From Setoptus koraiensis (lineage: Eukaryota; Animalia; Arthropoda), in the NCBI GenBank assembly GCA_048013815.1, contig CM106585.1, positions 18,724,001-18,788,000 of the forward strand: 64,000 nt of DNA, in the 5' to 3' direction. The notes under the pieces are model-generated. The model ran no database searches and was not told the origin of the DNA. It was given only the letters and a program-made list of their open reading frames with translations. Shown here piece by piece: positions 45,785 to 63,174 of this stretch (its first letter is position 1; each line of letters opens with the position of its first letter). Made by a program: the position numbers and the translations under genes.

Positions 45785-47617
45785 CTAGCTCTGTTCCTTC
45801 TTCGATTCGCTCTTCTTGTTGGATCCCGTGGTCGATTCGCCAGTCCGGCCGGATCCGTTGGTTGATTCGCTCTTCTGGTTAGATTCAGTGGTCGACTCGC
45901 CTTTCTTGTTGGATCCCGAAGTCGATTCGCCCTCCTGGTTGGCTCTCGTGCTCGACTCTCCTATCTGATCGGATCCCGTAGTAGATTCACTCTTCTTGTT
46001 GGACCCCGTGCTTGATCCGCTAGTCCGGCCGGATCCAGTGGTCTGATCGCTCTTCTGGTTAAATCCAGTGGTCAATTCGCCTTCCTGGTTGGCTCTCGTG
46101 CTCGACTCTCCTATCTGATCGGATCCCGTAGTAGATTCGCTCTTCTGGTTGGACCCCCTGCTCGATTCGCCAGTACGGTCTGGTCCAGCGGCCTGATCGC
46201 TCTTCTGGTTAGATCCAGTGGTCGATTCGCCTTTCTGGTTGGCTCTCGTGTTTGACTCTCCTGTCCGATTGGATCCTGTAGTAGATTCACTCTTCTTGTT
46301 AGATTCTGTGCTCGATTCGCCAGTACGGTCGGGTCTATTGGTTGATTCGCTCTTCTGGTTAGATCCGATGGTCGATTCGCCTTTCTGGTTGGATCCTGTA
46401 GTAGATTCACTCTTCTTGTTGGATCCTGTGCTCGATTCGCCAGTACGGTCGGGTCCATTGGTTGATTCACTCTTCTTGTTAGATTCAGTGGTCGATTTGC
46501 CTTTCTGGTTGGCTCTCGTGCTCGACTCTCCTGTCCGATCGGATCCTGTAGTAGATTCACTCTTCTGGTTGGACCCCGTGCTCGATTCGCTAGTCTGGCC
46601 GGATCCAGTGGTCTGCTCGTCCTTCTGGTCGACTTTAGAGGTCGATCCGCTTTTCTGATCTGATCCCGCGGTTGATTCGCCTTTCTGGTTAGATCCTGTG
46701 GTCGACTCGCCAGATTCTTTGACACTGCTGACATTGTTCTGGCCTGTTGTTGTCGCATTTTTGTCACCGTTTGCCTTTGAGACGCTTGTCTTATTGTTGC
46801 TGCTATTGTCAGTCGGATCGGACAACTCGTCGACCTGTCTTTCATGGTCATCATTTCTATTGTCCGATTGAGAAGAGCGATTGTTTTCGCTTGAAGAATT
46901 TTGATTTTTCGTCTCATTATCACCATTATCACCTGTGACACTTTTGGGGCCTCCATTGGTATTGCCCTCTTGCTTGCTGGAAGTTTGTCGAGCATTTTGG
47001 TCTCTGTCGTTCGAACGAGAATTCTCGAGGTTTTTCTTGTTAGAATCATCCGTTCTTTCACTGTTGCCACTTAAATTGTCGTCATCATCATTGTAACTCT
47101 TACTTGAATCATTTTTTTCGATCTTATCATCGGCACGGTTCTTGTTAGAATTTTCATCTGCTTCTTGCGAATCACTTTGTTGCCTATCGCTCCCATTTGA
47201 ATCTCTTGATCCTTGCTCGTTGTCACGCTTGTTGAAGTTGTCACTATTGACCTTACTTAGGTCTTGTCTATCAGAGCTCTCTTCCGAAATGTTATTTCTG
47301 TCAGATCGGTGACCGTTGTCGTTGAGGTTTTTGCCTTTAGTATTGTTGCCATTGTTACTAGAATCATCGTTATTTCCTATAGAACCAATTTGGATGTTGA
47401 TGTTTTTATCTCTTTTGACTCGTTTGAGAGGACCTAAGTTGCTGTGTCCAGTATGTGAAACAAGTTCAGAATTTTTGCTCTCCTCGGAATCCCTCCCGAG
47501 TGACAGCGATGATAATTTTTGATCGTAAGCAGGCGAAGCAGCGGCTCCGTGGTGGCCGACATAGGTAATGAAAACGAGCGCCATTACAACGTAGATCTTA
47601 TTAACATGAATGTCCAT
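45785..47617 (-). CDS. Secreted Ser/Thr/Gly/Asn-rich decapeptide-repeat protein (~610 aa), no recognised family
   Basis: Single open frame from ATG 47617. Signal-peptide-like MDIHVNKIYVVMALVFITYVGHHGAAA, furin-like KRVKR, N/D/S-rich spacer, then ~30 copies of an ES(T/S)TGS(N/D)(Q/R/K)(K/T)(G/S) unit. Confidence 0.8.
   Translation of the reverse strand: MDIHVNKIYVVMALVFITYVGHHGAAASPAYDQKLSSLSLGRDSEESKNSELVSHTGHSNLGPLKRVKRDKNINIQIGSIGNNDDSSNNGNNTKGKNLNDNGHRSDRNNISEESSDRQDLSKVNSDNFNKRDNEQGSRDSNGSDRQQSDSQEADENSNKNRADDKIEKNDSSKSYNDDDDNLSGNSERTDDSNKKNLENSRSNDRDQNARQTSSKQEGNTNGGPKSVTGDNGDNETKNQNSSSENNRSSQSDNRNDDHERQVDELSDPTDNSSNNKTSVSKANGDKNATTTGQNNVSSVKESGESTTGSNQKGESTAGSDQKSGSTSKVDQKDEQTTGSGQTSESSTGSNQKSESTTGSDRTGESSTRANQKGKSTTESNKKSESTNGPDRTGESSTGSNKKSESTTGSNQKGESTIGSNQKSESTNRPDRTGESSTESNKKSESTTGSNRTGESNTRANQKGESTTGSNQKSDQAAGPDRTGESSRGSNQKSESTTGSDQIGESSTRANQEGELTTGFNQKSDQTTGSGRTSGSSTGSNKKSESTTGSDQIGESSTRANQEGESTSGSNKKGESTTESNQKSESTNGSGRTGESTTGSNKKSESKKEQS
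45799..46708 (-). repeat. Coding 30-bp tandem array (~30 units)
   Basis: On the + strand, variants such as ctggttggatcctgtagtagattcactctt recur with 30-nt periodicity. This also explains the alternative-frame ORFs 46111-47070 and 46218-46658. Confidence 0.92.
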
Positions 47618-48084
47618 TGTGGATTGATTTAATTTTTTCTTCCGTGCACAAAAATACAAGAATCCCGTAGCCCGGTTGATGCAAAAATATCTATGTGGAT
47701 CTACAAGTGTAGTCGGACAGACAAGGAACGATCAATTTAAATTCTGTTTTTTCCAACTCCTCGCGTCAAGAATGCACACCGAGAAAGCTCTGATGAGTAA
47801 ATTATACACGCGGTTAAAATCAAACAGAGTGCCTCGGAAAGCGCCCCATCAATATTATTCGTGAATTTGTTTGCAATCTGAATTATTATCCACATCATGT
47901 GTTTGCGATCTATAATCGATAATGCATCATCACCCAGCTATAAATAGAAAAACCAGTCGATGAGTGGAGCTTTTTCTGCGTCAAAAGGGACCCGTGACGT
48001 CAACGGTAATGATAAAATGCAAGTTTGTAAAGATAGTTAATTGCTGAAATTGAACAAATTTGACGTATTGTAGGTTTTTATTTT

Positions 48085-49878
48085 TCAGGCAACCATTTCT
48101 TGGAGTTGCACAAAGATAAAAATCAACGATATCTGTTGAGTCAAGACGGAGAAAATTAGTTGCCGCCTGTACTTGGTTCCGGGACCATAGGAAAAGTTTG
48201 CCTGATCCAAGAGGATGCTTATGTGATCGTACTGCACCCAAAGATTCATAGTTTCTGTTATGTAATCGATTTTAGTTTGATTGTGCACCGTGATTGCAAA
48301 AAGTTTGCTGTCTATGCTGCCCCTAATGTGACGTCCACTGCTGTCTAAGTAGTCTTCATGGGTCGTCAGCATCATGTCACAGCATTCTCTTGAGGTGGAC
48401 AAATTCATGTTGAAAAACAAATCCCTCAAGCGTTCCAATTCGCAAGGTAACTGGCCCATGGAGTTAAAATGATACACTACAAGTATGAGAAAAGCCGATG
48501 AAAATAGCACCGCCAATATGGTCTCAGTATAGTAGCGGGCGCTCCATCCTATGGCCCCAATGAGAATGTAAAATGCCACTTGGAGACCCTCCAGCAACAC
48601 TGTCATGTATGTGCCAAAACTAAACAGTGCATTTATCTCGTCGATGGCGTCTTTTATGTCGACCAACATTGTTGTTATTTTCTTGAATCGAAACTGTGAA
48701 AATTTAACGCCACTCAACGAGCCCAGCAGATTATGTTGCTCTATTGACTTGCTGTGACCATCTCTGATTGCCCGGTCTATACTCAAATCTGGCCAATCTA
48801 ACGCAACTCTGCTGGCCAGATCCAACTGTGACTCTGTCATTCTGTTGAGAACATTCTCATCTGTCCACTGATGAATGTGCTTGGCAAAATTCAAGCTTAT
48901 GTAAGAGGCCAACTCAAAGGGCACAAACGTGAGTGAGACCAATATCAGTACGAACATCGCAGACAATATTGACAATATTATTTTTAGCCACATGTCCTCA
49001 TTGAAGTAATGATACACAACGGCAACGGTGGTCACCGGACCCCACAGCAGTAGTCCTATGTGATGATTAGAGAACAGTTTTGCGGCCAGACGAGCTTGCC
49101 AGTCGGCGTCTACATCGACCAGGCCATATCTGGTGATTACTGCGTGTAATTTGTCTCTAAAATGCACTAGTGACAACAGTGTACTCATGTGTTCAAACAG
49201 ATACAATATTGGACTCAACCGGAAACAAATCGATGTTAGAGGATGAGCGGTTATGTAGACAAATCTATCCGTTGTCAGCAATTCTTCGAAGGCGTAATAG
49301 CACACACAGCAAACCGTTATAGCAAACACCGCCGATATTGCGTATATCATTGAGATAGTACTAGGGGACATAAACTTCCCGTTAGCTCTGGTCAGCACCA
49401 TCCAAACAATCCAAGAGAAAGTCAGTGTGTGCATTTTGCCCAATAGAACGGCGCCAGGCGACATGGTCTTGGCCACTGTTTGACAATTTTCTTGGATTTT
49501 GTTTCTCTTGCTTGCCGTTGCGAACCGATCAAACGACAGTCCTGATAGAAACAACAAATCATTTAGGCCCTGCCTTGCGTCGTTCCAGTACTTTCCAAAT
49601 GAGTATCTCATGTAGAGGCTTCTGTTCTGTTGTTGCGACGGGTCCAATTGCCAGCCAATATTGCCAGCTTGACCAGCCTTAAGTTCATCCTTGCCACATT
49701 CATAATCCAATGAATGCTTTCCAGCAATCGCAAATCCCTTGGTATACGCAACATCATCAACACTGGTGATTGTCATCGCTGGCCTGCACGAATTCTGATG
49801 ATACTCGTCAGAGTGATTGCATATCTTTCTATTGCCGAATATTGGTCGCAAAATTTTGGTTAGTTCTAATTTTGGCAT
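48085..49878 (-). CDS. Gustatory receptor family (7TM chemoreceptor), intronless, ~597 aa
   Basis: Multiple hydrophobic helices. The C-terminus FSYGPGTKYRRQLIFSVLTQQISLIFIFVQLQ matches the Gr TM7 pattern (F..R.L..S......Y/I..I..Q). First ATG at 49878; the ORF-track start at 49923 is GTG. Confidence 0.7.
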   Translation of the reverse strand: MPKLELTKILRPIFGNRKICNHSDEYHQNSCRPAMTITSVDDVAYTKGFAIAGKHSLDYECGKDELKAGQAGNIGWQLDPSQQQNRSLYMRYSFGKYWNDARQGLNDLLFLSGLSFDRFATASKRNKIQENCQTVAKTMSPGAVLLGKMHTLTFSWIVWMVLTRANGKFMSPSTISMIYAISAVFAITVCCVCYYAFEELLTTDRFVYITAHPLTSICFRLSPILYLFEHMSTLLSLVHFRDKLHAVITRYGLVDVDADWQARLAAKLFSNHHIGLLLWGPVTTVAVVYHYFNEDMWLKIILSILSAMFVLILVSLTFVPFELASYISLNFAKHIHQWTDENVLNRMTESQLDLASRVALDWPDLSIDRAIRDGHSKSIEQHNLLGSLSGVKFSQFRFKKITTMLVDIKDAIDEINALFSFGTYMTVLLEGLQVAFYILIGAIGWSARYYTETILAVLFSSAFLILVVYHFNSMGQLPCELERLRDLFFNMNLSTSRECCDMMLTTHEDYLDSSGRHIRGSIDSKLFAITVHNQTKIDYITETMNLWVQYDHISILLDQANFSYGPGTKYRRQLIFSVLTQQISLIFIFVQLQEMVA

Positions 49879-50587
49879 GCTGCTAGATTGTTTGTGCCTG
49901 CTGATCACTTTCACTGTTCGCACTAAATCACGACAATATTACAAAGTGTCGCATTGGCCACATTCTAGATCCGGTCTCGACGATGTTTTAAGGGTCTAAT
50001 GCCAGCAAACTGGGAGCAATAGTTTGCTTGAATGAGAGCCTCATGTGCAAACAGAGAATAAGTGCATTTCCCTCAACTTTTGCGTCCCTTCATTAGATAG
50101 TCGTCGTCGATGAGAAGTGTTTGCAATCTCAAAGCTCGCTTTTCTGTGGGCCCCATACTCGATCAAGTACTTCGAAACTACCACCGCTATCATTGTCGGA
50201 GCTGTCACGCAGATTCAAGTTATAATAATGTATTATACGATTTATTATACCGATTAAAGGAGACAAGAGACTTAACGAGAAAGAGAATCGAATAGCGTGA
50301 CTAAACGTGATCTTTTCCCAGACAGAAGATCAGACATTTCGCTCGAAAGCACTCAATAAAAGAGGACCTTAATATCTAGGTACATGGTAGTGATTGGAGG
50401 GGCACCCCTCTCCGATTCGGGAAGAAGAAGCGAATCGGGGAGTAAGATATTCGCCGCTCCCCGACCAATCTTTGAGAACATCTGGAAATGTTTTCAAAAA
50501 AAAAAAAAATGTTTCAAAATTCGCGCCTATATATATTGACTTTGCTCAATGATTGGTACACCCGTCTGGAAAATTGCCGACTAACAC

Positions 50588-50644
50588 ATGGCCCAGCTCC
50601 TCATCTCTAAACGTGATAAACAAAAAGGGCAAGCTATTGCTCAG
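50588..50644 (+). CDS. THOC1: THOC1 putative exon 1, derived from RpS7 exon 1
   Basis: ATG...GCTCAG|GTACAT encodes MAQLLISKRDKQKGQAIAQ. An 88-nt intron (50645-50732) ending CCACAG splices in frame to the THOC1 ORF. 39 of the first 48 nt match RpS7 exon 1. Confidence 0.65.
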
Positions 50645-50732
50645 GTACATAGACCATAAGGATCATCCGACAACTTACACACATTCGATAGATATTTAAC
50701 AAATTACCGTCCTCATTCTTATCCAACCACAG

Positions 50733-52100
50733 CCGTCAACTGACATGGAACAGAACACTGTGACAAAATCCGAAAAAACTATTGCTCAGGTACATAGATT
50801 ATGTGACACATTGGACACTCAAACTATCACCGAATGCAAAGAAACATTTGCACAATTGGAGGAAGAACTGCAAGAGCATAAGGAATCGTCTCCCAGGACC
50901 TATCTAATAAGGGCTTGTTGCGATCTACTTCGAAGAGTCAATAGCCAAGTTGACCCAGAATTTGCCGGTAGAATACTTATCTTTTTAGCAAGGTTATTAC
51001 CCATCTTTGATCCATCAGGTTATAATGATACAGAGTTCAATTTTTTAGAAATACACAAGTACACTGCTGTGGAAACTCAAGATGACAGTGATAAAAAACA
51101 ACTCTCAATAACAGACTTCACTCAAGATGATCTTCACGATGATATCGAAGAGGGCGAAACTATAGACGGCGAAGAAGAGCAGCCTCTGGTTAAGTCGTTC
51201 ATTGAATCAGATGAAAAGTTATCCGAGAGATTCTGGAAACTCCAAGAGTACCTCAGAAATCCCATGGTTTTATTCGAAAAATCGACATGGTTCCTATTTC
51301 GATCACATATAGATGCTTTATTATCAATGTTTGAAGCAAACCCAACAAGTGTTGGTGTTTGGTGTCTGACATCCAACTACCTTATCGAACCAAGATCGCT
51401 TGCGAGACTACTTCGTGATGGAAATCTTAGAAGATGTTTTCTAGTTCAGGTATTGATCATATTCAAATGGTTAGCTACCCCAAATCAATCCAAATTCAAA
51501 CGTGAGAATCAAAAGCTCGACAAAAGTGGGCTAATTTGGATCGACTCCACCTCAAAAAGAATCCACAGAGTTCTATCAAATACTCCTAAAGATGATGGTG
51601 GAGAAGCTTTTGACAAGTATATCAACCATGTCCTTCTACACGAGGAGCAATGGGTCTCTTGGATGAGCAAGACATTAAAAGAGAGAAGTGAAGATTATCC
51701 CAAGCCGATGGATGATGAGCCAGTCAGAATGCGATCTACATACAAAATGAAACGCAACATAGGTGAAGAACTGCGCAGTGCCGAACAAATCAATATGCAC
51801 CTGGTTGGAAGCAAAGAATTGAACAAGCTTTGGAACTACATACCGGATAACTGGGAGGCTTGTAAGTCGAGTGAAAGGATTAATGTACCAAGTTTAAAAG
51901 ACTTCTTCGAGAAGGCATCCCAATCATCACCTGAGCAGAGAAAAGAAATATTTAAAGACCCCAGCTTTAACTTTAGAGCCCTACGTTTGCTCAGTAGACA
52001 GAGCAATGACTTTATAACGCCGTCCTCGGCAGTTATTGTAGAAATCGATACATATCTGAGTAATGTGACAGACGTTATGTGTAAGAAAGGATTTAATTAA
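50733..52100 (+). CDS. THOC1: THO complex subunit 1 (Hpr1), main exon; native N-terminal ~90 aa and C-terminal death domain not seen
   Basis: YLIRACCDLLRRVNSQVDPEFAGRILIFLARLLPIFDPSGYN and GSKELNKLWNYIPDNWEAC...PSLKDFFE...FRALRLLSR match remembered THOC1 motifs (LLRMCNDLLRR...FCGRIQLFLARLFP; LTRLWN...RALRLLAR). Confidence 0.9.
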   Translation, partial: PSTDMEQNTVTKSEKTIAQVHRLCDTLDTQTITECKETFAQLEEELQEHKESSPRTYLIRACCDLLRRVNSQVDPEFAGRILIFLARLLPIFDPSGYNDTEFNFLEIHKYTAVETQDDSDKKQLSITDFTQDDLHDDIEEGETIDGEEEQPLVKSFIESDEKLSERFWKLQEYLRNPMVLFEKSTWFLFRSHIDALLSMFEANPTSVGVWCLTSNYLIEPRSLARLLRDGNLRRCFLVQVLIIFKWLATPNQSKFKRENQKLDKSGLIWIDSTSKRIHRVLSNTPKDDGGEAFDKYINHVLLHEEQWVSWMSKTLKERSEDYPKPMDDEPVRMRSTYKMKRNIGEELRSAEQINMHLVGSKELNKLWNYIPDNWEACKSSERINVPSLKDFFEKASQSSPEQRKEIFKDPSFNFRALRLLSRQSNDFITPSSAVIVEIDTYLSNVTDVMCKKGFN

Positions 52101-52613: not shown

Positions 52614-52888
52614 CTTCTGGGTCTCTTCTGTTTGTTTGTACTATTCTTTCTTGATTGTTTTGGCAAAATAGTTCTTCTTGCGATGACAACGACGTGTTTG
52701 CCGGAGAATTTCTTCTCTAACTCGCGCACAATTCTTGCCTGAATTTTCTGAAAGCCTTTTAGTTGTGGGTATGGCACCCAGATGATGATAGCTTTCTTTC
52801 CCTTAGCCTCGACCTCTTTAGCTCCACATATTTGCAACTCACGGAGTTGAGGCTTTAGGTCGGTACTCTGTTCCAGGTCGGTTAATGC
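52614..52888 (-). CDS. RpS7: 40S ribosomal protein S7 exon 2
   Basis: CTCAG| acceptor, AG|GTTAGT donor. [26 protein letters not shown]...[20 protein letters not shown]...QKRPR. Confidence 0.97.
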
Positions 52889-52972
52889 CTGAGGGTGGAT
52901 GGATAAGGAAAATTGTTAGAAATTTATCGATAGTCAGGTGTGAGAGTTACAGGACCATGGTGATATACATAC

Positions 52973-53050
52973 CTGAGCAACAGTCTTTTCAAATTTTGCT
53001 ACAGCTTGCCCTTTGGGCTTAACAATTTTAGAGATGAGAGGCAGGGCCAT
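52973..53050 (-). CDS. RpS7: 40S ribosomal protein S7 exon 1
   Basis: MALPLISKIVKPKGQAVAKFEKTVAQ|GTATGT. The three exons total 582 nt, or 193 aa plus stop. Confidence 0.95.
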
Positions 53051-53603
53051 GTTCGATGGTACACCAATTGATATTACTAATAATGATGGGGCTCCTTTAG
53101 ACGTTTGTGGTAAATGTGAAAAAATCTAATAAAGAGTCTCGATCTAGTATTTCAGAATCAGTGTGCAGGACAGTGGCAAAGAATACTTCTTCCGCTGATG
53201 CACATGCCATTCGCTGTGCACGCCTGGCCGCCGGCTACTGCTGTGTAAAAGCTCACTCACACACATGCAAATGCCCAGTGCGCAGGCTCAGAGCATCTTT
53301 GCGCGAACTTTAAAACAACTTATTTTTTTCTTTAGTAGTAACGTCCGATCCCAGCACAGCCATTGGCGGTGGCAGCACTGATGGCAACCCAGTTTTGTTC
53401 GTCATTTGAGCGCCTTTTTTTCTGTGCGATTTGATTTTAGCGCACTTTGTTCTCGTAAACCTATCCAACGGTTATTCTGGTCACTGTTGACACAACAGAC
53501 ATTCGCGGTGAATGCCTATGCCGAGTGGTCTAATATATTGTTTGTAATCACTCAAACTCATTATTTTACCCGACTATTATTATTATCAATTATTATTACT
53601 ACC
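53051..53603. promoter_or_regulatory. Head-to-head RpS7 / CENP-C intergenic region (probable shared promoter)
   Basis: 553 bp between divergent start codons; no specific motif demonstrated. Confidence 0.4.
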
Positions 53604-55280
53604 ATGGAGAACGAACCCAATTGGTTGGTCCAGATGAAGGCGCTCAAAGAGAGAAACAAACGCCGTCCTTTTAGGCAGTCCAACACTTGGACCAAATTTA
53701 CCGAAGCTGTGGTGCAACAGATGCATCTTGATATGCCAAAACTATTAGAGGATTCAAATGAAAATCATGGCAGTGCTATATTTGACCACACTCCCATGAT
53801 CGCAGAGGAAATTCAACATGAATCGGACCTATCTGGAGTTTCCGATCAAGCGGACGACCATGAAAGCATCATAGATCATGCTCCCATCATTGATGAAGAA
53901 AGCGAACACGAGTCAAGCCAATCTGATTCTATAATCGAAAAGATGCCAATTGTACAGTCCCAGATTGAAAATACTCATGATAACAATGGAAGCTTCATCA
54001 TGGACCATTCTCCTATCATTGCCGAGGAAAGCAACCACGAATCAGACATATCTGGTGTTCCCGATCAAGTGGACGATCATGAAAGCATCATAGATCATAC
54101 TCCCGTCATTGCAGAGGAAAGCATCCACGAGTCCAACACATCTCACTCAATGAGCGATGGAGAAGCGGATGAAGATGAGCCGTCGACCGCTCATCTTCAG
54201 GTGGAAAAATCCATTCGTAATGCCAGCAAGCGCAGCTTCACCTCAGACCATACTTCAGTCATCGCCGAGGACAGCAACCGCGAGTCCAACATATCTCACC
54301 CAATTAGCGATGACAGTGACGATGAGCCGTCGACCGCTCATCTTCAAGTGGAGAAATCCATTCGTGATGCCAGTAAGCGCAGCTTCACCACCGACCATAC
54401 TTCAGTCATCGCTGAGGACAGCAACCACGAGTCCAACATATCTCATTCAATGAGCGATGACGGTGAGGACGAGCTGTCGACCGCTCATATTCAGGTGGAA
54501 AAATCCATTCGTAATGCCAGTAAGCGCAGCTTCACCACCGACCATACTCCAGTCATCGCCGAGGGCAGCAACCGCAAGTCCAACAGATCTCACTCAATGA
54601 GCGATGACAGTGACCATGAGCCGTTGACCGCTCATCTTCAGGTGGAAAAATCCATTCGTAATGCCAGTAAGCGCAGCCCCGAACCCGTGATTGAAAATCC
54701 CCCGGAAGAACCCGCTGAGTGTGATGTTCCTGGTACGGTGCCAGGCATCAGACGATCCACTCGTCAGCGAAGGCCGCCTGGAGAATTTTGGCGAGGCGAG
54801 AGGCCGAAGTATGATAGCACGTTGACTTACGTTGGCAATCAGCCTGCTCGTCCAATTTACGACTATTCAAGAAAACAAAAACGTCCGTCTAACCTGCCAC
54901 CCAGAGGTCCCAGTGAAAAGAAATATAAAGTTCCTGCGGGATGCGTCGTGCCTCCAGATTATGAGTACCAAAAATCCAGAACAGGAGAGTTTGATTTGGT
55001 CACGTTAAATCTCAATGGAATGATTTATGGAAAGATGATTTTAGACCCGGGAAAGCGAAAGCAAGAAACAAAAATCGCCATCAACCTATTATACAATTTT
55101 TTCGTACTACGTGGTCGTGTGATGTTCAAGAACAAGACCCCCAAAACTACCAAATATTATATCGATGACAGCCCCCGAAAATCCGCCCTCCAACTCAAAG
55201 GTGGGACCTCGTATTCCATAACGAATGTCGGCGAAGAGCCAGCTCACATTTTGTACTGGACCATTGCAGAAGATCTATGA
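53604..55280 (+). CDS. CENP-C: Centromere protein C (CENP-C/Mif2), intronless, ~558 aa
   Basis: CENP-C motif RRSTRQRRPPGEFWRGERPKY (54750-54812). C-terminal cupin (YGKMILDPG...FFVLRGRV...YSITNVGEEPAHILY). N-terminal LKERNKRRPF resembles the Mis12-binding motif. ATG at 53604; the ORF-track start is TTG. Confidence 0.88.
   Translation: MENEPNWLVQMKALKERNKRRPFRQSNTWTKFTEAVVQQMHLDMPKLLEDSNENHGSAIFDHTPMIAEEIQHESDLSGVSDQADDHESIIDHAPIIDEESEHESSQSDSIIEKMPIVQSQIENTHDNNGSFIMDHSPIIAEESNHESDISGVPDQVDDHESIIDHTPVIAEESIHESNTSHSMSDGEADEDEPSTAHLQVEKSIRNASKRSFTSDHTSVIAEDSNRESNISHPISDDSDDEPSTAHLQVEKSIRDASKRSFTTDHTSVIAEDSNHESNISHSMSDDGEDELSTAHIQVEKSIRNASKRSFTTDHTPVIAEGSNRKSNRSHSMSDDSDHEPLTAHLQVEKSIRNASKRSPEPVIENPPEEPAECDVPGTVPGIRRSTRQRRPPGEFWRGERPKYDSTLTYVGNQPARPIYDYSRKQKRPSNLPPRGPSEKKYKVPAGCVVPPDYEYQKSRTGEFDLVTLNLNGMIYGKMILDPGKRKQETKIAINLLYNFFVLRGRVMFKNKTPKTTKYYIDDSPRKSALQLKGGTSYSITNVGEEPAHILYWTIAEDL
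53688..54170 (+). repeat. Coding DH(T/S/A)PxIxEESxHES repeat block shared with 61110-61820
   Basis: 30-aa and 43-aa unit variants. Positions 53984-54081 are identical to the reverse complement of 61382-61479. Confidence 0.92.
54174..54678 (+). repeat. Coding 147-bp (49-aa) tandem repeat, ~3.4 copies, in CENP-C
   Basis: Units start at 54174, 54321, 54468 and 54615 (DEPSTAHLQVEKSIRNASKRSFT.DHT.VIAE.SN.ESN.SH..SDD). Confidence 0.95.
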
Positions 55281-55936
55281 TAATAAATTGCTTTAGAATT
55301 GAAAAAACTCTCCCTCTCTCTCTTCTGGGAAACAAAAAATTTCGGCCAAATTATGGGTGTCTGAGTGTGTGTGTGTGTTCACAACAGTGTTGTTGTTGAA
55401 TGGTCAGAGACCTGTTTGTGCGTGTGCACATGAAATTTAAACAAGTGCTGTTGTTGCTGGCAGTAGATGCGTTACACAGTTCAACTTTTTTGCTAGCAAG
55501 TTGCAACTGATAACAAATAGCAGTCGACAATAACAGTGCTCTGACATACTAATACCGTTACAAGTCTAGACTCTTGTTTACGTACTGACACAGTGGATAA
55601 ACAAGAGTTTTAGCAAGATCGGCGGTTGTTAGTGCGACAACAAAAAGAATGCAGGAGTTGACAATGAAAATGTAGAGTGAGAGAGACAGAGCAAGAAGAT
55701 CAAGTAGACGCGTTTAGAGCAACTCACTGTACGAAGAAGGAGTCTAACCTGGAAGTCATCAGTCGTGACGTTTTATTTCGATAGCTACACCTTTTGCAAT
55801 AATAATTGAAGAAAAAGAGGAGTTTCTCTCTTACAATAATGTCAATCAAATAGGCAATACAATCAATTTACTACGACGCTTGTCACCAATAATCAATAAA
55901 TCATATACTCTTGATCATATGTGATATCAAACTGCC

Positions 55937-57169
55937 ATGCCATCCACCAAAATTGACAAACCGAAAATGCCTGGATGTGCCCCCACCATAAACCAGGCCA
56001 CTGACGTTGCTCCCGTGGATACTGCCTCTACCTCACAAAATCTGATCCCATCAATACCACGTCAGTCGGATACCAAGACCGAACTCTCAAGCTCTTCTAT
56101 TCCGTCAAATACACACAACAATACCACCACCAAAATAACAGCAACAGCCATTCCCTCAATAGACTTGCACGGTATAGAGACAAAAAAAGAGCCAGCTACC
56201 AGGGGTCCCACAATAAGTATCATTGATATTGGTAATATAAACAACAATAGCAACTCCGCCACCAACAACACAGATCAGGTTGATTCTATGGACGCATCTA
56301 ACAACCACACCCCGGACCATTTGTACGTTGGAGCCTCTAGACAAATCCAAAACAATCAAAATCACCAGGCTGCATCGTCACATCTCGTGAATAGCGGCCA
56401 AATGAATAGCCGCCAGAGGCCTAGAATGAATTTGTCGGACCATTTAGGACAATCGCTTAGGACCATGTATTCAACAGTATCCATAGACGTACCACCTTCG
56501 TACCATGATATTCCGGGAACTGTGCCCTCTTATCATGGCAGAACCTCTGGTCCGCCTCCGTCATATGATGATGTTATCAATCCAAATGCACCACCACCTA
56601 CGTATCAGTCTCTATTCGGTCAAGTGATGGAGGCAAGAAAGACTTCAAATGGCCTGCTAGATTTACTGAGGAGACTTTTAATCATACTGATCAGTACATT
56701 AGGCTGCACAATAATAATAGGATTCTTAATACTGATACCATTCAGTATGATCATAGTGGGTGCGGTCTATTTAGATGATTGTCATATTGAGAACATACCA
56801 GCATTCTTACTAATAGGAGGCTCAGTTTGGGCAATCAAAAATATTATCAGCTGCTATTCGCAATGCAAACGAGAACCAGATTATGACTTTGATGCAGAGA
56901 ACCGTTCCAGGAGTGGCAGATATGGATCCGCATTGAATTGTTTTCTATTTGGTTGGTTTATTGTTGGTTGTGTAATTGTTTATAGGAATTACGAACCAAA
57001 CTATGATGATCCAACTAGTTTGAGATATTGCAACAAGAATCTCTATTCGTACGCATTCTGGTTAGTAACGTCGACCATAGTCATATTTAGTCTATTTGTT
57101 AGTTGTATTTGTTGTCTTATGATATCATCAGTTATAGCGAGCCATCAGGATGGAGACGATCCATCGTAA
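55937..57169 (+). CDS. TMEM272: TMEM272-like multi-pass membrane protein with N-terminal PY motifs, intronless
   Basis: C-terminal half IPFSMIIVGAVYLDDC...IPAFLLIGG...FLFGWFIVGCVIVYRNYEPNY...YCNKNLYSYAFW fits the TMEM272 family. Low-complexity N-terminus with PPSY, PPPSY and PPPTY motifs (56489-56605). Confidence 0.72.
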   Translation: MPSTKIDKPKMPGCAPTINQATDVAPVDTASTSQNLIPSIPRQSDTKTELSSSSIPSNTHNNTTTKITATAIPSIDLHGIETKKEPATRGPTISIIDIGNINNNSNSATNNTDQVDSMDASNNHTPDHLYVGASRQIQNNQNHQAASSHLVNSGQMNSRQRPRMNLSDHLGQSLRTMYSTVSIDVPPSYHDIPGTVPSYHGRTSGPPPSYDDVINPNAPPPTYQSLFGQVMEARKTSNGLLDLLRRLLIILISTLGCTIIIGFLILIPFSMIIVGAVYLDDCHIENIPAFLLIGGSVWAIKNIISCYSQCKREPDYDFDAENRSRSGRYGSALNCFLFGWFIVGCVIVYRNYEPNYDDPTSLRYCNKNLYSYAFWLVTSTIVIFSLFVSCICCLMISSVIASHQDGDDPS

Positions 57170-57479
57170 TTATGATTATAGAAAAACAAAAATGTTAATA
57201 ATGTTAGATGTTAGAAGCCAATCGCCTTTACATAAGTTATATTTTGACAGTAGTTACAGTAGTTATTACCTTTCTTGCTTTAGAACCACTACAATACTAT
57301 TATATGCAAACTCCTAGTCCTACTTTGACATAAAGCAACTCAAATCAATTCTCTTATATATATTTTATCTGTATTAAAACTCAACGAAACCTCAGACCTG
57401 TTTCACTTCCACCATTTGTTTACATTCTTATCCATTGCTGAGCTACAATTTCTCAAGCGCTTATACTGCTAATTAGCAG

Positions 57480-57638
57480 TTACGAGCAACTGTGACATTG
57501 ACAATCCACCGGTTCCTCTACCACAATGTTCATGCTACTTAGTGGACCCGACGAAATTCTTTGGCCGTTCTTTCCCGTGCAATCTTTCAGTGTTGCAATC
57601 GTCTTTCGCATTGTAGATTCCCTACAACAATAGCACAT
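57480..57638 (-). CDS. Pburs: Bursicon beta (partner of bursicon) exon 2
   Basis: AAAAG| acceptor. MCYCCRESTMRKTIATLKDCTGKNGQRISSGPLSSMNIVVEEPVDCQCHSCS* supplies 7 of the 11 bursicon cysteines. Confidence 0.9.
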   Translation of the reverse strand: MCYCCRESTMRKTIATLKDCTGKNGQRISSGPLSSMNIVVEEPVDCQCHSCS

Positions 57639-57773
57639 CTTTTTGATAATTTTCGTTGGATAACAAGTGATTAGTTAAAAAATGATGAGTTAGAGATCAA
57701 AAATAAAAATATCGGTAACAGTTCAAGTTCTACAATATTATAGGACGAAAGAAATTTTGTGTCATGGACTCAC

Positions 57774-58676
57774 CTTGTGAAATCCCGACAGTGTTCTGAT
57801 TGTAGGTCGAGATATTGACAAGCACGATCCCTCGCATTTGGATAAGCGCAAATTCGCCCAACAAGTTCGTACAATCTCTCCCGAAATCGCATCGCGATCG
57901 TCTTTCTCCAACAAGACGTTCGTTTGAACAGTTTCGCATCTATTGCTTGTGGTAGTCGTAGGATTGTCGTTCACGATCTCAGACTTGATAGTGTTGGCAG
58001 GTCCACTCATTTCTTGGTTATAGTATCGATTTAATTGATGCTTGTAGCTCGTTGCAAAGTCATCATCTCCTTTGCCATCGTTGTAAATAGTGCCAGCAAC
58101 TAGTTGGCTGCCAATATGCAATGGCAGCTTGTATAAGCCGTTGCTCACCGCACCCAAATGGTAAGCCAATGGTTTATTTGCGAAAACGACCGCCTCAGAG
58201 CCCTTGTGCAATAGTGTCATATCCGGTGTTTGCCCTGTTTGTTGTTGCTGTGAATGTATTGTTCTCGTGGACATCTTTCGTAACTGTCTTTTCTCCTTTA
58301 TTGGAGACACATTTTTAAAATCTCCACCGACCTCAATAATGTAATCCTGTTCTTTTGGCTGCAACTCCATGTCAAGATAATACCCACTGTTTCTCAACAT
58401 CGGAGCCGAGTTACTCCTATCAGACGCTATTGAATTGGCGCTCATGTTGGCTAGTTGAGGAGTTAACCCCCAAAACAACTCATTGAAGTTTTCTCTCTGT
58501 TGAAATTGCACATTATCGTCCTCTGGTAGCCATGTATGATATCTTGCTCCTTGAAGAACATTAAAACTTGCAGAAGTTTGACTCACTATACAAATTATAA
58601 GATAGAGAGCCAGTTTAGGTCTGACACACTTTTCATAATATTTAACCCTAGCTCCGTGATTGCAGTCTGATGCCAT
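57774..58676 (-). CDS. Pburs: Bursicon beta exon 1, with signal peptide and long N-terminal extension
   Basis: Ends CETVQTNVLLEKDDRDAISGEIVRTCWANLRLSKCEGSCLSISRPTIRTLSGFHK|GTGAGT, which matches Pburs CETLxSEIHLIKEE...RTC...KCEGxC.S...P....GF.K. 135-nt intron. ATG at 58676. Confidence 0.85.
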
Positions 58677-59642
58677 ATTTGAGAATTTCTTCTCCAAGTT
58701 TTAAACAAAGCTTTTTATCCTAACACTAGGTTTTGATTGTGTGAAATCAGTCGATTTTTGAGGATAAAGTTGCGACCGTGACTATGTGCGAATGTGAGAA
58801 GGCAACGAACAAATTTATGCTTGCACGATTCGTCTGATTTGAATTTAAAATTATTTCCGTTCATGCTGACATGGATATTGCATTATATTAGATGAAGCAA
58901 AATTAAGTAAAATTCATTATTCCGGTAAGCAGGTGAACACGTCTGAAAGCCATTCTCAAGTGGCTTGCTATTAGCTTTTAAATTAATTTTGTTTAGTGAG
59001 TTAGTGACCTTTTGAGTTGACATCATGACTGCGATCTAGATATCCCGCTGTTATGTTATATGCACGTACATCGTTCTACAAAGAGGTTTATTCAATATTT
59101 TCATTCAATATTCATTCTGGCACTCACAAGCACCTATATTGCGACTAGACCATATTGAGTATATTGGTAATTCACGGAACAATTTTCGGTTCATTTTGCC
59201 GATGGCAGTGGGAGGGAATTCGCCTCTTTGGTTCGCTAACACGTTGGACAACAAAATCAGAAATGGAGCACTTGCTGATGCCAGTAAGAAGATTGTTGTT
59301 CAACAAAACAAAAGCCCTGGCTACATGACCCTCTGAGCACTCGAATAACTGCCACCTCTTTCATCTAGTCCTGTTCGATCTTCGCAGATTGAATAATATT
59401 AAAAATTTCCAGCCAACGTGAGGGCGTTTATGAGATCAACACTTTCTAACATTGGAGTGTGTTTTAGTGGTGAAACTACGTGGTAGAAGTTACTGACGAT
59501 TACTCGGATCGATGAGAGTAGCACAAGCCAGTAGGCACTGACCTATTAAGTTAAAGGGTCGTAGGGACCCAAATGTATATTAAGTATGTGAAAAAAAAAC
59601 TTCAATGAATGAGGATATCACCAATTTGAATTTTTTTATTAA

Positions 59643-62117
59643 TCATAAAGTATTATTGTGAATGTAACCCTGTTGCTGGTCATAATAGGGGACGTTTTGC
59701 TGTTGGTAATGATATTCTGGAATAGGGGGTGCATTCATCGGTAAAGGTGGAGGTAGGTCGGCATATGATGAATCGCTCAAAACTTCATCCAGCATTCCAT
59801 TAAAACCACCACTGATCGAACCTGAGTCTACAAACATAGATTCATCCAGATAACCGAGCCTCTTTTTCAGTGATGCTATCTCGTTTCTAACATGCTCCTC
59901 TTTCTGACGAGTATTCTGTGCGTGATTCAGGTTCGCGTCTACCTGTGTCTGGCATAGATTTATCCTCTCTGGCCAATTATCTCGCTCCAATTGGGATCTT
60001 AGATAGTCTCTCTCGCTATTTAAACTACTATTCGCTTCCTCTGCCTGCCTGAGAAGATCCTCGATTTGCGAGACTCTCATATCGAAATTCTCTTTTCTAC
60101 CCTTTAGAGAGTTCAGTCTTTCTGTCCTGATTTTATCTTTTATGCTCAATTGCTCCTTTTCCACCTCGGATATTTGGGTCAACTCAATGATTTTTTCATC
60201 GAGTTTTTCATACTTAACATCTAATTCGCATTTCAAATGTTTCAATTGTCTCAATTTGGACATAGATTGTTCCGTCTTTGTATCACATTTTGATAGTTGT
60301 ACTTTCAACTGCTCTAGACTAGAGTCGAGACTCACTTTTTTGCGTCTATAGTTAGTGAGCAAGTTTCCTACATCTGTCGGACATTCCTTCAAAATATCAG
60401 CCATAGTCTCACGCATAGTTTTGAGGGTGTCAATTTTGATATTAAGGTCTTTAACTTCTTTGAGGTCTTCCCTTGAGTAACTATTCGTTGTAGCCAACTC
60501 TGTCACACTCGACCTTATTTTCTTGAATTCATTGGAAAGCAAAGCAATTCTATGAGATCGTTCATCCTTCTCTTTAGATAGGTCTTGCACCTTAGTTGAC
60601 AATTCCTGCACCTCATCTGGATCAACAAATACTAAGTTCTCATGTTTAGAATCCAGACATCTTATTGAATTTAATTTAATAGAGATTTCGTTGTCAACCT
60701 CACACAGTTGAGCCGATAGCAAGCTCTTTTCTTGAGTATGAGATTCAAGATCTTCCTTCAATCGTCTCAACTGATCGTTTTGTTCAATGTTGTCTTTCTT
60801 AATCACATCTTGATGAGCTTTGAGAGCTGCCAAATGGGCAATATTTCGAGTTTTTTCATCAATCTCATGTTTGAGAGTTTCCAATAGAGCAGGGTTTCGA
60901 GTTTTGTCACCATGTTTCATATTATTATTTTGCTCCAGCATTTGTCTTAGCTCAGTTAATTTTCTATTTTTCACCTGAAAATCCTTCTCGGATAGTGAGG
61001 AATGCTTCGAACGACTGAAATAGAGTCTTATTAAATCTGATACAAAAAGAATCACGAGGGCCATACCTAAGGATTGGATTTTAGGTGTGAAGTCTTGGCT
61101 GGAATTCTCGGATATGTTTGGCTCGTGGTTGTTCTCCTCAGCAATAATATAAGCATGGTCTATGTCAGCGCTTGCAGAATTATCATCGCGAATAGCATTT
61201 TCAACATGGGTCCTGTCGATTACAGGATCAGATGTGCTTGATTCGTGGCTGCTTTCCTCGGAAATGACGGGAGTATGATCTATGATGCTTTCATGATCGT
61301 CCACTTGATCGGGAACACCAGATGTGTCTGATTCGTGGTTGCTTTCCTCGGAAATCACGGGAGTATGATCTATGATGCTTCCATGATCGTCCACTTGATC
61401 GGGAACACCAGATATGTCTGATTCGTGGTTGCTTTCCTCGGCAATGATAGGAGAATGGTCCATGATGAAGCTTCCATTGGCTTCATGAATAGTGTTTTCA
61501 ATCTGGCGATGTACAATTGGTATCTCTTCAGTCGTGGAACCAGACATGCTTGACTCCTGGTGGCCTTCTTCATCAACGATGGGAGCATCGTCCATGATGA
61601 AGCTTCCATTGTTATCATGAGCATTTTCAATCTGGGGCTCTACAATCGGCGTCTTTTCGATTATAGAATCAGATTGGCTTGACTCGTGTTTGCTTTCTTC
61701 TGTAATCATTGGAGCATGCTTCTTGAAAGCGCCTCCATGATTATCATTAGAAGCCTCTGATAGTTTTGGCGTATCGATATTCATCGGTTGCTCAACATGG
61801 TCGGTAGATTTGGCCCGATCAAAGAGTCCTTTATCAAGATCCCAATCGCTATCATCGTTAGAATCGAGCTCGTCGTCTTCGTATGACATATCTGGTGGAG
61901 GATTATAAATCGGATGATAGTTGAGTGAAACATTTTCGCTGGCCTCTATTGCAATGTCATACACGGGCACAGTTGGCGTTTTCGTTTGAGTTCCGAGTTG
62001 ACTATTCAAGGGACGCGTTATATATTCGGCTCGTAGAGATTCTGCCTCATTTTGGAACCAGAGTGTGACTGAATATAATATTATAAATAAGGTAACAGAT
62101 GTATGACTAGGCCCCAT
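59643..62117 (-). CDS. TANGO1/cTAGE5 (MIA2/3)-like type I membrane protein, ~824 aa (tentative)
   Basis: Signal-peptide-like N-terminus, acidic luminal region, TM LGMALVILFVSDLIRLYF, ~400-aa coiled coil and a PPP-containing tail. The segment LRSQLER...I...DANLNHA...RNEIASLKKRL resembles the remembered cTAGE5 CC2 end. No SH3 domain seen. Confidence 0.55.
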   Translation of the reverse strand: MGPSHTSVTLFIILYSVTLWFQNEAESLRAEYITRPLNSQLGTQTKTPTVPVYDIAIEASENVSLNYHPIYNPPPDMSYEDDELDSNDDSDWDLDKGLFDRAKSTDHVEQPMNIDTPKLSEASNDNHGGAFKKHAPMITEESKHESSQSDSIIEKTPIVEPQIENAHDNNGSFIMDDAPIVDEEGHQESSMSGSTTEEIPIVHRQIENTIHEANGSFIMDHSPIIAEESNHESDISGVPDQVDDHGSIIDHTPVISEESNHESDTSGVPDQVDDHESIIDHTPVISEESSHESSTSDPVIDRTHVENAIRDDNSASADIDHAYIIAEENNHEPNISENSSQDFTPKIQSLGMALVILFVSDLIRLYFSRSKHSSLSEKDFQVKNRKLTELRQMLEQNNNMKHGDKTRNPALLETLKHEIDEKTRNIAHLAALKAHQDVIKKDNIEQNDQLRRLKEDLESHTQEKSLLSAQLCEVDNEISIKLNSIRCLDSKHENLVFVDPDEVQELSTKVQDLSKEKDERSHRIALLSNEFKKIRSSVTELATTNSYSREDLKEVKDLNIKIDTLKTMRETMADILKECPTDVGNLLTNYRRKKVSLDSSLEQLKVQLSKCDTKTEQSMSKLRQLKHLKCELDVKYEKLDEKIIELTQISEVEKEQLSIKDKIRTERLNSLKGRKENFDMRVSQIEDLLRQAEEANSSLNSERDYLRSQLERDNWPERINLCQTQVDANLNHAQNTRQKEEHVRNEIASLKKRLGYLDESMFVDSGSISGGFNGMLDEVLSDSSYADLPPPLPMNAPPIPEYHYQQQNVPYYDQQQGYIHNNTL
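61110..61820 (-). repeat. Coding repeat block homologous to the CENP-C repeat block
   Basis: IDTPKLSEASNDNHG...ESSQSDSIIEK.PIV..QIEN.HDNNGSFIMDHSPIIAEESNHESDISGVPDQVDDH aligns with 53688-54450 in inverted orientation. Confidence 0.92.
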
Positions 62118-63174
62118 GATGAGTGTGGAATGGACGGCAGGTATATAATAATATATGATAAATAATGATATTTTCCACAAACGTTCGTCCAAATGCAAAA
62201 TTAAGCCAGGGAAAAAAATAAATAATAATAAGAAACAAATTTTGGCCTACAAGATATTTCAAGATGAAAGCCTGAAATTGTGTCTGTATTTTTGCAACGA
62301 TATTTAGGCGCTCAATGCGAAAAGAATCCGTCAGTGGCGCTAGTAGCGTAACTGACAAGTGAGCAGCATATTGCTTTGTTTGTGATGACGCAACGCAGTC
62401 TCTACTCTGATAAACTTCTAATTTACTATCTCTTACATAGTAATCGATAGAAATCAACAATTGAGACACATTTCTGTTGTTGCTTTTTTTGTACTGGGTG
62501 TTCCGTTAGAATTATGCACTACGATAGAGATTCACTGAGCCGACAGTATCGCACCATTAATACAGCAAAATTTTCCTAAATTCAATTGAATGCTGGTCTA
62601 TTCAGCGATCGATCTGAGAGCCTCATTTTCTCTGACTAAACTCACAAGTTGTCGGATGTGTAAGTCTGTCCACTAGATAGGTTATTTGTCGGTCTAACGA
62701 CTGCGACAGTTTGCCGACACGACAGATGACTTTTCACTTTTGAGATGCTAATTATTTGGCTGACATTAATTATCGTTCACTATGAGAGTGTCAATCTTTT
62801 TTTCGTCACCATCTTGTTGCCGAGAAAAGTTCACTCAATTTTTGGGCATGTTCTGGAAATGGTTGTTACTTCGCTCGCAGATGCACATGTCTTTTTGAAT
62901 ATCCGTCGACATAAATTCGTTATCTGTCAACCGGAGTCGAAAATTTCACTTTTCCTCATGAATACTAGCTTATCTTTTTTTCGTTTTTAGCAAGTGGGTA
63001 CACCGCGTCATTCCTCGCAAGTCTTCGCCAATAGTCTTGTGGTAGTCATTCCATTTTTTTCTCTCTCGCTCTTTCGAGCTTCAACCGAATAGAATCTAGC
63101 TCACCCCATTCAGACGCTTGGCGATCTGATCAACATCGAACGACAACAATAATATCTCTTCAGTAATCTGCAAA

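Follow-up and report, generated by a model that had tools for sequence, protein, structure and literature searches.

Two convergent genes and their repeat arrays

The window analyzed here, a 64-kb stretch of Setoptus koraiensis DNA, includes two long, intact, convergent ORFs that lie 4 kb apart on opposite strands. Gene A (cen) is predicted to encode the kinetochore protein CENP-C, and gene B (tan) is predicted to encode an orphan membrane protein. Each ORF contains, in frame, an array of acidic repeat units, and the two arrays are positioned 7 kb apart in inverted orientation (Table 1). The array of cen has a period of 147 nt (3.9 copies with 88% matches, as determined by TRF), a net charge of -49, and 26 His residues, whereas that of tan has periods of 90 nt and 129 nt (TRF) and a net charge of -45.

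Judged by its sequence, gene A is a true CENP-C because its CENP-C motif and its cupin both match solved CENP-C chains. PDB chain 7by0_K aligns with the protein in two stretches (E=3.5e-5) that occur in the correct order (motif, then cupin). The CENP-C motif, R-R-S-x-R-x(4)-P-x(2)-[YF]-W, binds the centromeric nucleosome and can be read in cen as RRSTRQRRPPGEFW. The segment that holds it (residues 375-404) aligns with the corresponding peptides of chains 7by0_K, 7bxt_K (E=0.0016), 4x23_V, and 7xhn_C. The presence of the cupin dimerization domain is weakly indicated, and at the level of sequence only: Pfam model PF11699 (CENP-C_C) matches residues 470-551 with E=0.006 and 17.3 bits, which is under the curated cut-off of 29, and the single-sequence AF2 model of the C-terminus (pLDDT 43) is too poor for a fold test. 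The best Atlas matches of the protein are all CENP-C_C, with scores of 0.88-0.90. An earlier note on this DNA had identified the gene as CENP-C, and the Pfam, Atlas, and PDB chain matches uphold that assignment. In CENP-C/Mif2 proteins the N-terminus binds the Mis12 complex and serves kinetochore localization; residues 1-28 of cen are basic (KERNKRRPFRQ) and were not matched by any of the family models.

None of three large protein searches gave a homologue of tan; neither the whole protein nor its residues 345-824 had a hit among 5.8 billion proteins, and the protein matches no PDB chain and no Pfam family. A Pfam search of residues 1-99 at E<=10 likewise revealed no remnant of an SH3 domain. 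In addition to the features listed in Table 1, tan has a heptad-rich region (residues ~447-740) and a short proline tail (...LPPPLPMNAPPIPEY...) with a single PPP. Atlas look-alikes of residues 340-824 are generic coiled coils only, among which a fragment of TGO1 ranks 72nd (score 0.71), and the repeat block has no look-alike over 0.69. The earlier note had described this protein as TANGO1-like. This label is not supported, as there is no homologue in these protein, PDB, and Pfam searches and no lumenal SH3 domain; the resemblance is confined to a generic architecture in which a transmembrane segment is combined with coiled coil and a short proline tail. The same note had placed the tan array in the ER lumen. 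Its location on the exoplasmic side of the membrane is plausible given the N-terminal hydrophobic stretch and the positive-inside rule, whereas assignment to the ER compartment is not supported.

In THOC1, the gene next door, the 5' end includes the 5' end of RpS7 as an inverted copy. As a synteny route to relatives, THOC1 gave no lead: its best match is 37% identical and resides on a contig that is not syntenic.

Table 1. Features of the two genes and of the shared block (coordinates within the window)
Feature	Position	Strand	Basis or remark
Gene A (cen), predicted CENP-C, 558 aa	53604..55280	+	Single ORF; ATG 53604, context ACCATGG
cen repeat array, aa 29-358	53688..54677	+	Unit map; 59% of protein
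cen units 1-4	F 53688-53783, S 53784-53873, L 53874-54002, S 54003-54092	+	Unit map
cen units 5-8	X 54093-54245, X 54246-54392, X 54393-54539, X 54540-54677	+	Unit map
Predicted CENP-C motif, aa 375-404 (...GIRRSTRQRRPPGEFWRGER...)	54726..54815	+	Alignment to CENP-C motif peptides, PDB chains
Putative CENP-C C-terminal cupin, aa 467-552	55002..55259	+	Second stretch vs 7by0_K; 7x85_A alone E=0.34
Gene B (tan), orphan, 824 aa	59643..62117	-	ORF; ATG context ATCATGG
tan N-terminal hydrophobic stretch, aa 8-21	62055-62096	-	Hydropathy
tan repeat array, aa 101-340	61098..61817	-	Unit map
tan units 1-4	F 61817-61722, L 61721-61593, L 61592-61461, S 61460-61371	-	Unit map
tan units 5-7	S 61370-61281, X' 61280-61161, terminal head 61160-61110 (+ 4 aa)	-	Unit map
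Predicted transmembrane segment, tan aa 347-368	61014..61079	-	Kyte-Doolittle 19-aa window peak 1.81; basic residues on C-terminal side
Putative most recent conversion tract, cen side	53984..54106	+	98 nt exact, 1 mismatch, 24 exact; L tail, S unit, next head
Putative most recent conversion tract, tan side	61357..61479	-	Exact-tract comparison

The shared block and its mosaic divergence

Approximately 0.7 kb of sequence is homologous, colinear, and in frame between cen (53689 to ~54450) and tan (61816 to 61111). Inverted-repeat arms of 147-180 nt with 72-93% identity span 53689-54143 versus 61816-61230, and these arms, along with the in-frame ORFs, confirm the shared inverted coding block that the earlier note had reported. 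The limits of homology are sharp and common to both genes (53689/61816 and about 54443-54590/61111), and comparisons of the flanks and upstream regions of both blocks using blastn and repeat comparisons detected no significant homology past these limits, so that the flanks offer no hint as to the donor. A degenerate unit pattern has 11 matches in the 64-kb window versus 0.01 expected, and all reside in the two genes. Unit counts and orders differ as had been claimed, with F-S-L-S-X-X-X-X in cen versus F-L-L-S-S-X'-head in tan.

The 98 nt at 53984-54081 are the exact reverse complement of 61382-61479 and are followed by one mismatch and then 24 identical nt (54083-54106 and 61380-61357), precisely as first described. 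Other exact tracts are found in shifted registers and comprise 61 nt (54050-54110/61323-61263), 39 nt (53905-53943/61690-61652), and 32 nt (53974-54005/61621-61590). The tracts of 98+24, 61, 39, and 32 nt thus represent four different repeat registers.

Divergence is not uniform along the block. The S units of the two genes (c3S/t3S) are 99% identical in nucleotide sequence, whereas S units within a gene are 81% (c1S/c3S) or 91% (t3S/t4S) identical. Similarly, the cross-gene L pair (c2L/t1L) is 90% identical versus 74% for the two L units of tan (t1L/t2L). In both the S and L comparisons, paralogous units are therefore nearer between loci than within them. The cross-gene F pair is 77% identical by the aligned-codon matrix and 74% identical when the same 32 codons are compared ungapped. 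Even within c2L the affinities are mosaic: its head is closer to t2L, and its middle equals t1L. Nei-Gojobori dS values, which rest on just 10-30 synonymous sites per segment, rise from 0 in the c3S/t3S core (0 changes at 18 synonymous sites) through 0.12 in L and 0.35 in F, which is the first flank, to 0.8-1.2 between old head pairs. The identical tract is thus longer than the background divergence would permit, synonymous sites included, and a run of this length was reached in 0 of 200,000 shuffles of the mismatch positions in the 417-nt colinear alignment.

From the mosaic divergence, the closer cross-gene units, and the shuffle result, we infer that an old partial duplication was probably followed by unit turnover and by gene conversion that repeatedly moved short tracts from one inverted array to the other. 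The earlier note had arrived at a similar series of events (older transfer, independent unit gain and loss, recent conversion), which fits the mosaic dS, the excess of cross-gene over within-gene identity, and the shifted-register tracts. A single recent duplication without conversion, after which a strongly constrained core was retained while the flanks diverged fast under relaxed or positive selection, is improbable. Protein-level evolution of the flanks is indeed fast (dN/dS of ~0.9 in the F and L linkers), but the core is also identical at synonymous sites, whereas dS elsewhere is 0.35 to >0.8. Moreover, a single duplication does not account for cross-gene units that are closer than within-gene units, and exact tracts on several shifted registers need more than one exchange.

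Read support and alternative explanations

In DNA runs X1 and X2, one ~6.6-kb contig spans positions ~54648 to 61279 and confirms the interval between the blocks. Copy-specific unitigs in these runs (e.g., 61450-61619) are at 1x depth, and 2x depth is observed on identical pieces only (165/78 and 162/78 in X1; 205/110 and 250/110 in X2). The unitig of the identical core (61384-61473) is at 2x depth in both runs. Because doubled depth is confined to identical pieces, the block is a two-copy repeat rather than a dispersed element or a collapsed assembly. The copy-specific unitigs and both flank contigs recur across short-read runs of different samples and studies, although these short unitigs do not link outer to inner flanks across the identical core, and the order of 61280-61660 is unbridged by the listed contigs.

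In two additional runs, X7 and X8, coverage is limited to genic parts and is RNA-like in this respect, a pattern that low-coverage DNA of a diverged strain could mimic if the 95% filter were passed in coding regions only. Contigs from these runs link unique coding sequence of tan to the block across 61110 with no joints, and X7 contains a share of 0.71 of the sequence words in cen 53604-54720. The earlier note had proposed RNA coverage as a check on splicing, and RNA-like coverage is present in both blocks without splice joints, as judged by contigs for tan and by word share alone for cen. No RNA-like contigs were found on tan 61428-62117, which leaves the start codon of tan and the 5' half of its block without transcript support. 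One X7 contig carries an A>C difference at 61262 that matches the cen state, and a second difference (61249) does not. With one of two differences fitting cen, this contig was judged too thin to define strain-specific tract limits.

The occurrence of the repeat in two functionally unrelated genes could also be explained if the unit were part of a dispersed mobile or multicopy coding element inserted in many genes. This is very unlikely given that identical pieces have just twice the depth of single-copy flanks in two DNA data sets, that the window has no further copies, and that both limits of the insert are in frame with no homology beyond them. Furthermore, a search of 1.84 billion representative proteins for relatives of the block gave no real match, and the one hit (E=6e-5, with the tan block as query) was a spurious low-complexity match.

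There is likewise very little chance that an inversion between the arrays made, or still remakes, these genes by swapping the 5' ends of the CENP-C and membrane-protein genes. A single inversion does not create homology, even though in-frame inverted arrays located 7 kb apart with at most 123 nt of near-identity are a possible substrate and the inverted isomer would keep the frame. The present arrangement is also the functionally sensible one, and no joint or loose end of the other isomer was observed among the contigs of four runs, which drop rare variants. Least credible is an assembly artefact (a mis-join, collapsed repeat, or misoriented segment), since despite the breaks of short-read graphs inside the block and the unbridged interval noted above, the same unitigs and flank contigs recur with consistent 1x/2x depths, both ORFs remain open through arrays of different unit composition, and the hydrophobic N-terminus sits with the transmembrane protein and the basic N-terminus with CENP-C.

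Proposed history and comparison with known systems

Under the duplication and conversion model, an array of ~0.6 kb that already consisted of acidic, His-rich units would have passed from one gene, through a single inverted copying event, to the coding 5' third of the gene close by. Both copies begin at the same truncated first unit and have a common order of F, L/S units, X unit, and head. Independent gain and loss may then account for the four X units of cen, for the additional S unit in each gene, and for the additional L unit of tan. Short-tract, non-reciprocal conversion between the inverted arrays would have rewritten the L/S part more than once. The most recent putative tract measures at least 123 nt and has no synonymous difference. 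This order of events, with duplication first and conversion later, is read from one genome.

The 17-aa unit head (DHxPxIAEESxHES) appears from codon comparisons to be under purifying selection in both genes (dN/dS of 0.14-0.2), with linkers that drift almost neutrally. Given these constrained heads and near-neutral linkers, the block in both proteins most likely acts as a disordered acidic spacer with a repeated short motif. Its sharing with an unrelated membrane protein also argues for a general role, as an acidic spacer or a carrier of the motif, and against a kinetochore-specific domain. The poorly conserved, long middle of a kinetochore scaffold thus can be almost entirely a young repeat array, and one that, under this model, is in active exchange with the gene for a membrane protein of unrelated function. 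The locus offers a clean, small natural case for measuring the length and direction of conversion tracts between inverted coding repeats, and for testing whether the head motif serves in the nucleus as well as on the exoplasmic face of a membrane.

It is conceivable, though doubtful, that the block belongs to a set of local inverted partial copies between neighbors, of which the RpS7 copy in THOC1 would be another, and that a lineage-specific template-switch or fold-back process repeatedly grafts coding pieces. If so, the evolution of the CENP-C linker would be tied to a secretory-pathway membrane protein by ongoing conversion. If the neighboring inverted copies reflect one process, this would represent a genome-wide mode of gene remodeling in a very compact genome.

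Like other members of the CENP-C family, cen keeps the conserved motif and, putatively, the C-terminal cupin, and its middle is poorly conserved and probably disordered. The linkers of CENP-C proteins reportedly evolve rapidly, with internal exon duplication in some lineages. cen differs in that residues 29-358, nearly its whole middle, consist of a lineage-specific acidic repeat shared with another gene, and in that it has no recognizable central domain or CCAN-binding regions. Our literature search for CENP-C and gene conversion found nothing on sharing of this kind.

TANGO1 and cTAGE5 (MIA3/MIA2) are ER-exit-site proteins, and TANGO1 proper has a lumenal SH3-like cargo-binding domain. tan has the same predicted order of parts (exoplasmic N-terminus, one transmembrane segment, cytosolic coiled coils, and a proline-containing tail). 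However, it has no sequence similarity to these proteins, no lumenal SH3 domain, and just one PPP, and its resemblance appears to be architectural only, reflecting a generic layout.

Overall, this case is genuine yet modest, one instance of an evolutionary process that is already known. Interlocus (ectopic) gene conversion occurs between nearby duplicated segments in Drosophila duplicated blocks (PMC2588116), and its rate and tract length have been reviewed (PMC3924818). As in such systems, the putative conversion tracts of cen and tan are short, non-reciprocal, and far smaller than the duplicated block, their history shifts along the block, and some segments are closer than the age of the duplication predicts. 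In this instance, however, the block is an internal coding repeat array of two otherwise unrelated genes, in inverted orientation and with tandem-unit turnover within each array. The locus also resembles chimeras made by partial gene duplication or exon shuffling, in that a coding piece would have been grafted in frame into a neighbor and both genes are intact. In contrast to those chimeras, the grafted sequence consists of low-complexity repeats and is neither a folded domain nor a promoter-bearing 5' end, and conversion appears to keep it from drifting apart from its source.

Identity of the two genes

The assignment of the first gene as CENP-C was confirmed at the sequence level. Among PDB sequences, residues 365-558 matched only CENP-C chains by phmmer, and the best match (7by0_K, E=3.5e-5) covers two stretches in the right order (see table). 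The Pfam family CENP-C_C matched the same C-terminal stretch with an E value of 0.006, which is below the family cut-off, and language-model look-alikes were all CENP-C_C clusters (scores 0.88-0.90). An AF2 single-sequence model of the C-terminus has a pLDDT of 43, and the assignment is thus one of sequence and not of fold.

The second gene (tan) encodes an orphan protein. A word-indexed protein library contained no match to the whole protein or to residues 345-824, even at E<=1. Likewise, no relatives were found among PDB sequences and no Pfam families were found, specifically no SH3 domain in residues 1-99. Atlas look-alikes are coiled coils of a generic kind; a TGO1 fragment comes no higher than rank 72. 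Given this lack of relatives, the term “TANGO1-like” used in the earlier note describes the architecture of tan only and is not a tested family membership. This architecture includes a 14-residue hydrophobic stretch at the N-terminus and one predicted transmembrane segment flanked C-terminally by basic residues (both by hydropathy), heptad-rich stretches at residues ~447-740, and LPPPLP in the tail. By the positive-inside rule, the acidic block would lie on the exoplasmic side; beyond such topology rules, the proposed ER-lumenal location is not supported.

Features of the CENP-C and tan genes and their surroundings (nucleotide positions in the window unless marked aa)
Feature	Position	Strand	Remarks
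Semaphorin-like ORF	43177-45420	+	Sema and PSI domains
Long ORF	45785-47659	-	no Pfam family found
Long ORF	48085-49923	-	no Pfam family found
THOC1 ORF	50745-52100	+	convergent with RpS7
THOC1 5' region / RpS7 5' end	50586-50800 / 52867-53052		inverted copy, ~80% identical
CAG|GTACAT tandem duplicate	50631-50672 / 50776-50817		145 nt apart
CENP-C ORF	53604-55280	+	ATG to stop, intact, 558 aa
CENP-C array	aa 29-358		F-S-L-S-X-X-X-X, 59% of protein
CENP-C motif	aa 375-404 of CENP-C		GIRRSTRQRRPPGEFWRGER, first 7by0_K stretch
Cupin	aa 467-552 of CENP-C		second 7by0_K stretch
Alternative-frame ORF	54157-54453	+	98 aa
ORF	55937-57169	+	410 aa, no Pfam family found
ORF	57762-58697	-	311 aa, no Pfam family found
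tan ORF	62117-59643	-	ATG to stop, intact, 824 aa
tan array	aa 101-340		F-L-L-S-S-X'-head
tan transmembrane segment	aa 347-368		predicted
Alternative-frame ORF	61370-61630	-	86 aa
Core, CENP-C / tan	53984-54081 / 61382-61479		98 nt, exact reverse complement
Inverted arms	53689-54143 / 61816-61230		gapless, 147-180 nt, 72-93% identity
AT-rich 5' sequence	53560-53606 / 62120-62225		ATTATTATT-type, directly 5' of both starts

The shared inverted block and its setting

The two genes are convergent, with two unrelated ORFs between them. Sequence comparison bore out exactly the reported 98-nt identity (the core), followed by one mismatch and 24 further identical bases. Other exact tracts of 61, 39, and 32 nt each lie in a different repeat register. 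Sensitive blastn ends the homology at 53689/61816 and ~54443-54590/61111, and found none between the two genes outside those limits. Across the 64 kb, a degenerate head pattern occurs at 11 sites where 0.01 would be expected, none of them outside these genes. Start contexts are good (ACCATGG for CENP-C, ATCATGG for tan), and the AT-rich upstream sequences share no more than a low-complexity similarity, which lacks significance (E=0.28).

Both arrays combine a common 17-aa head (DHxPxIAEESxHES..) with three kinds of linker behind it, producing units of type S (30 aa), L (43/44 aa), and X (46-51 aa; X' in tan, 40 aa). The F unit is a truncated, L-like unit with an identical starting point in both genes, and unit order is colinear, which argues for what would be a single transfer of an already existing array. 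With net charges of -49 (CENP-C) and -45 (tan), the blocks are strongly acidic, and they are abundant in Ser, His, and Ile. The X linker, found only in CENP-C, carries a basic KRSF element; the single X' of tan is without it, and this part is untouched by conversion. This difference would be compatible with some specialisation of the arrays. The alternative-frame ORFs inside the arrays arise because the repeats contain no stops and are not genes in their own right.

Window genes, which also include a semaphorin and RpS7, are almost without introns. The best library match to THOC1 is 37% identical, and the following matches are insects. A second inverted partial copy, between THOC1 and RpS7, adjoins the CENP-C/tan pair; its arms (55, 42, and 34 nt) include a copied exon-intron junction, CAG|GTACAT. 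Between CENP-C and tan, the plus-strand ORF has an N-terminal half rich in Ser/Thr/Asn, two PPxY-type motifs (PPPSY, PPPTY), several C-terminal hydrophobic segments, and a 3' end covered by RNA-like contigs. The minus-strand ORF has a cystine-knot-like stretch (C..CEGSC..) at its end; it may be a hormone- or growth-factor-like gene that continues through an intron.

Copy number and RNA-like coverage

Logan contigs from two DNA-like runs (X1 and X2; different samples and studies) were compared with 56700-62600. A contig of ~6.6 kb starts within the last CENP-C X unit (~54648) and ends within the tan array (61279), and thus confirms the entire interval between the blocks. Another of ~4.9 kb runs outwards from 61661. 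Inside the block, the graph is broken into unitigs. Copy-specific unitigs have 1x depth (e.g., 61450-61619, without differences), whereas those coinciding with exact tracts have 2x depth: 165 vs 78 (X1) and 205 vs 110 (X2) at 61263-61323, and 162 (X1) and 250 (X2) at 61384-61473. One unitig of 101 nt shows five differences and represents the CENP-C copy; those five are exactly the mismatches between the two genes. Therefore, the identical core is present twice per genome, and the 2x depth rules out both a collapsed repeat and a high-copy dispersed element. How outer and inner flanks are joined is not proved by such short unitigs; in the window arrangement, however, CENP-C has a basic N-terminus and the membrane protein a hydrophobic one.

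Depth is low in X7 and X8, two further runs of unrecorded library type; an adapter loose end is present, and their coverage looks like RNA. Within 56700-62600, only genic parts are covered, with no contigs on intergenic DNA or the 57762-58697 ORF. No joint interrupts the contigs that lead from unique tan coding sequence, the transmembrane region among it, across 61110 to 61411. X7 contains 0.71 of sampled words of CENP-C 53604-54720 vs 0.34 of the whole 8.9 kb. This jointless, genic-only coverage speaks against splicing of the blocks out of the mRNAs, although none of these contigs lies on tan 61428-62117. Low-coverage DNA from a diverged sample could mimic this pattern, and X7 contigs do differ from the window by ~1-1.5%. 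One X7 contig (tan 61200-61321) carries the CENP-C-type base at 61262, immediately beyond the exact tract of 61 nt, and lacks it at 61249; the single site at 61262 may point to strain differences in tract limits.

Mosaic divergence and probable gene conversion

Nucleotide identity between the arrays varies unit by unit (labels give gene, c for CENP-C or t for tan, then unit position and type). Across genes it is 77% for F/F (74% ungapped), 90% for c2L/t1L, 99% for c3S/t3S, and ~62% for X/X'. Within CENP-C, c1S/c3S are 81% identical; within tan, t3S/t4S reach 91% and t1L/t2L 74%. Nei-Gojobori dS is 0 for c3S/t3S (0 of 18 synonymous sites), 0.12 for L, 0.35 for F, and 0.8-1.2 for old head pairs. 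Unit c2L is itself a mosaic, with a head nearer t2L, a middle equal to t1L over 39 nt, and a shared tail. When the 58 mismatches of the 417-nt colinear alignment were shuffled, an identical run as long as that observed arose in 0 of 200,000 trials.

A single recent duplication would leave neither old flanks nor exact tracts in shifted registers, and it fails as an explanation. Constraint cannot account for the mosaic because synonymous sites are homogenised as well. In heads, dN/dS is 0.14-0.2, against ~0.9 for the linkers of F and L, which shows constraint on the head motif of both genes and drift in the linkers.

The dS mosaic, the shuffle test, and the shifted-register tracts agree with the earlier proposal and lend good support to an old transfer followed by recent conversion. 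Repeated short-tract interlocus gene conversion would have turned an old pair of arrays into a mosaic. This process is known from duplicated blocks in Drosophila (PMC2588116), which display the same kind of pattern. The sharing between CENP-C and tan is thus a new, tidy example of processes already known (partial duplication, tandem-unit turnover, and interlocus conversion) in an unusual gene pair.
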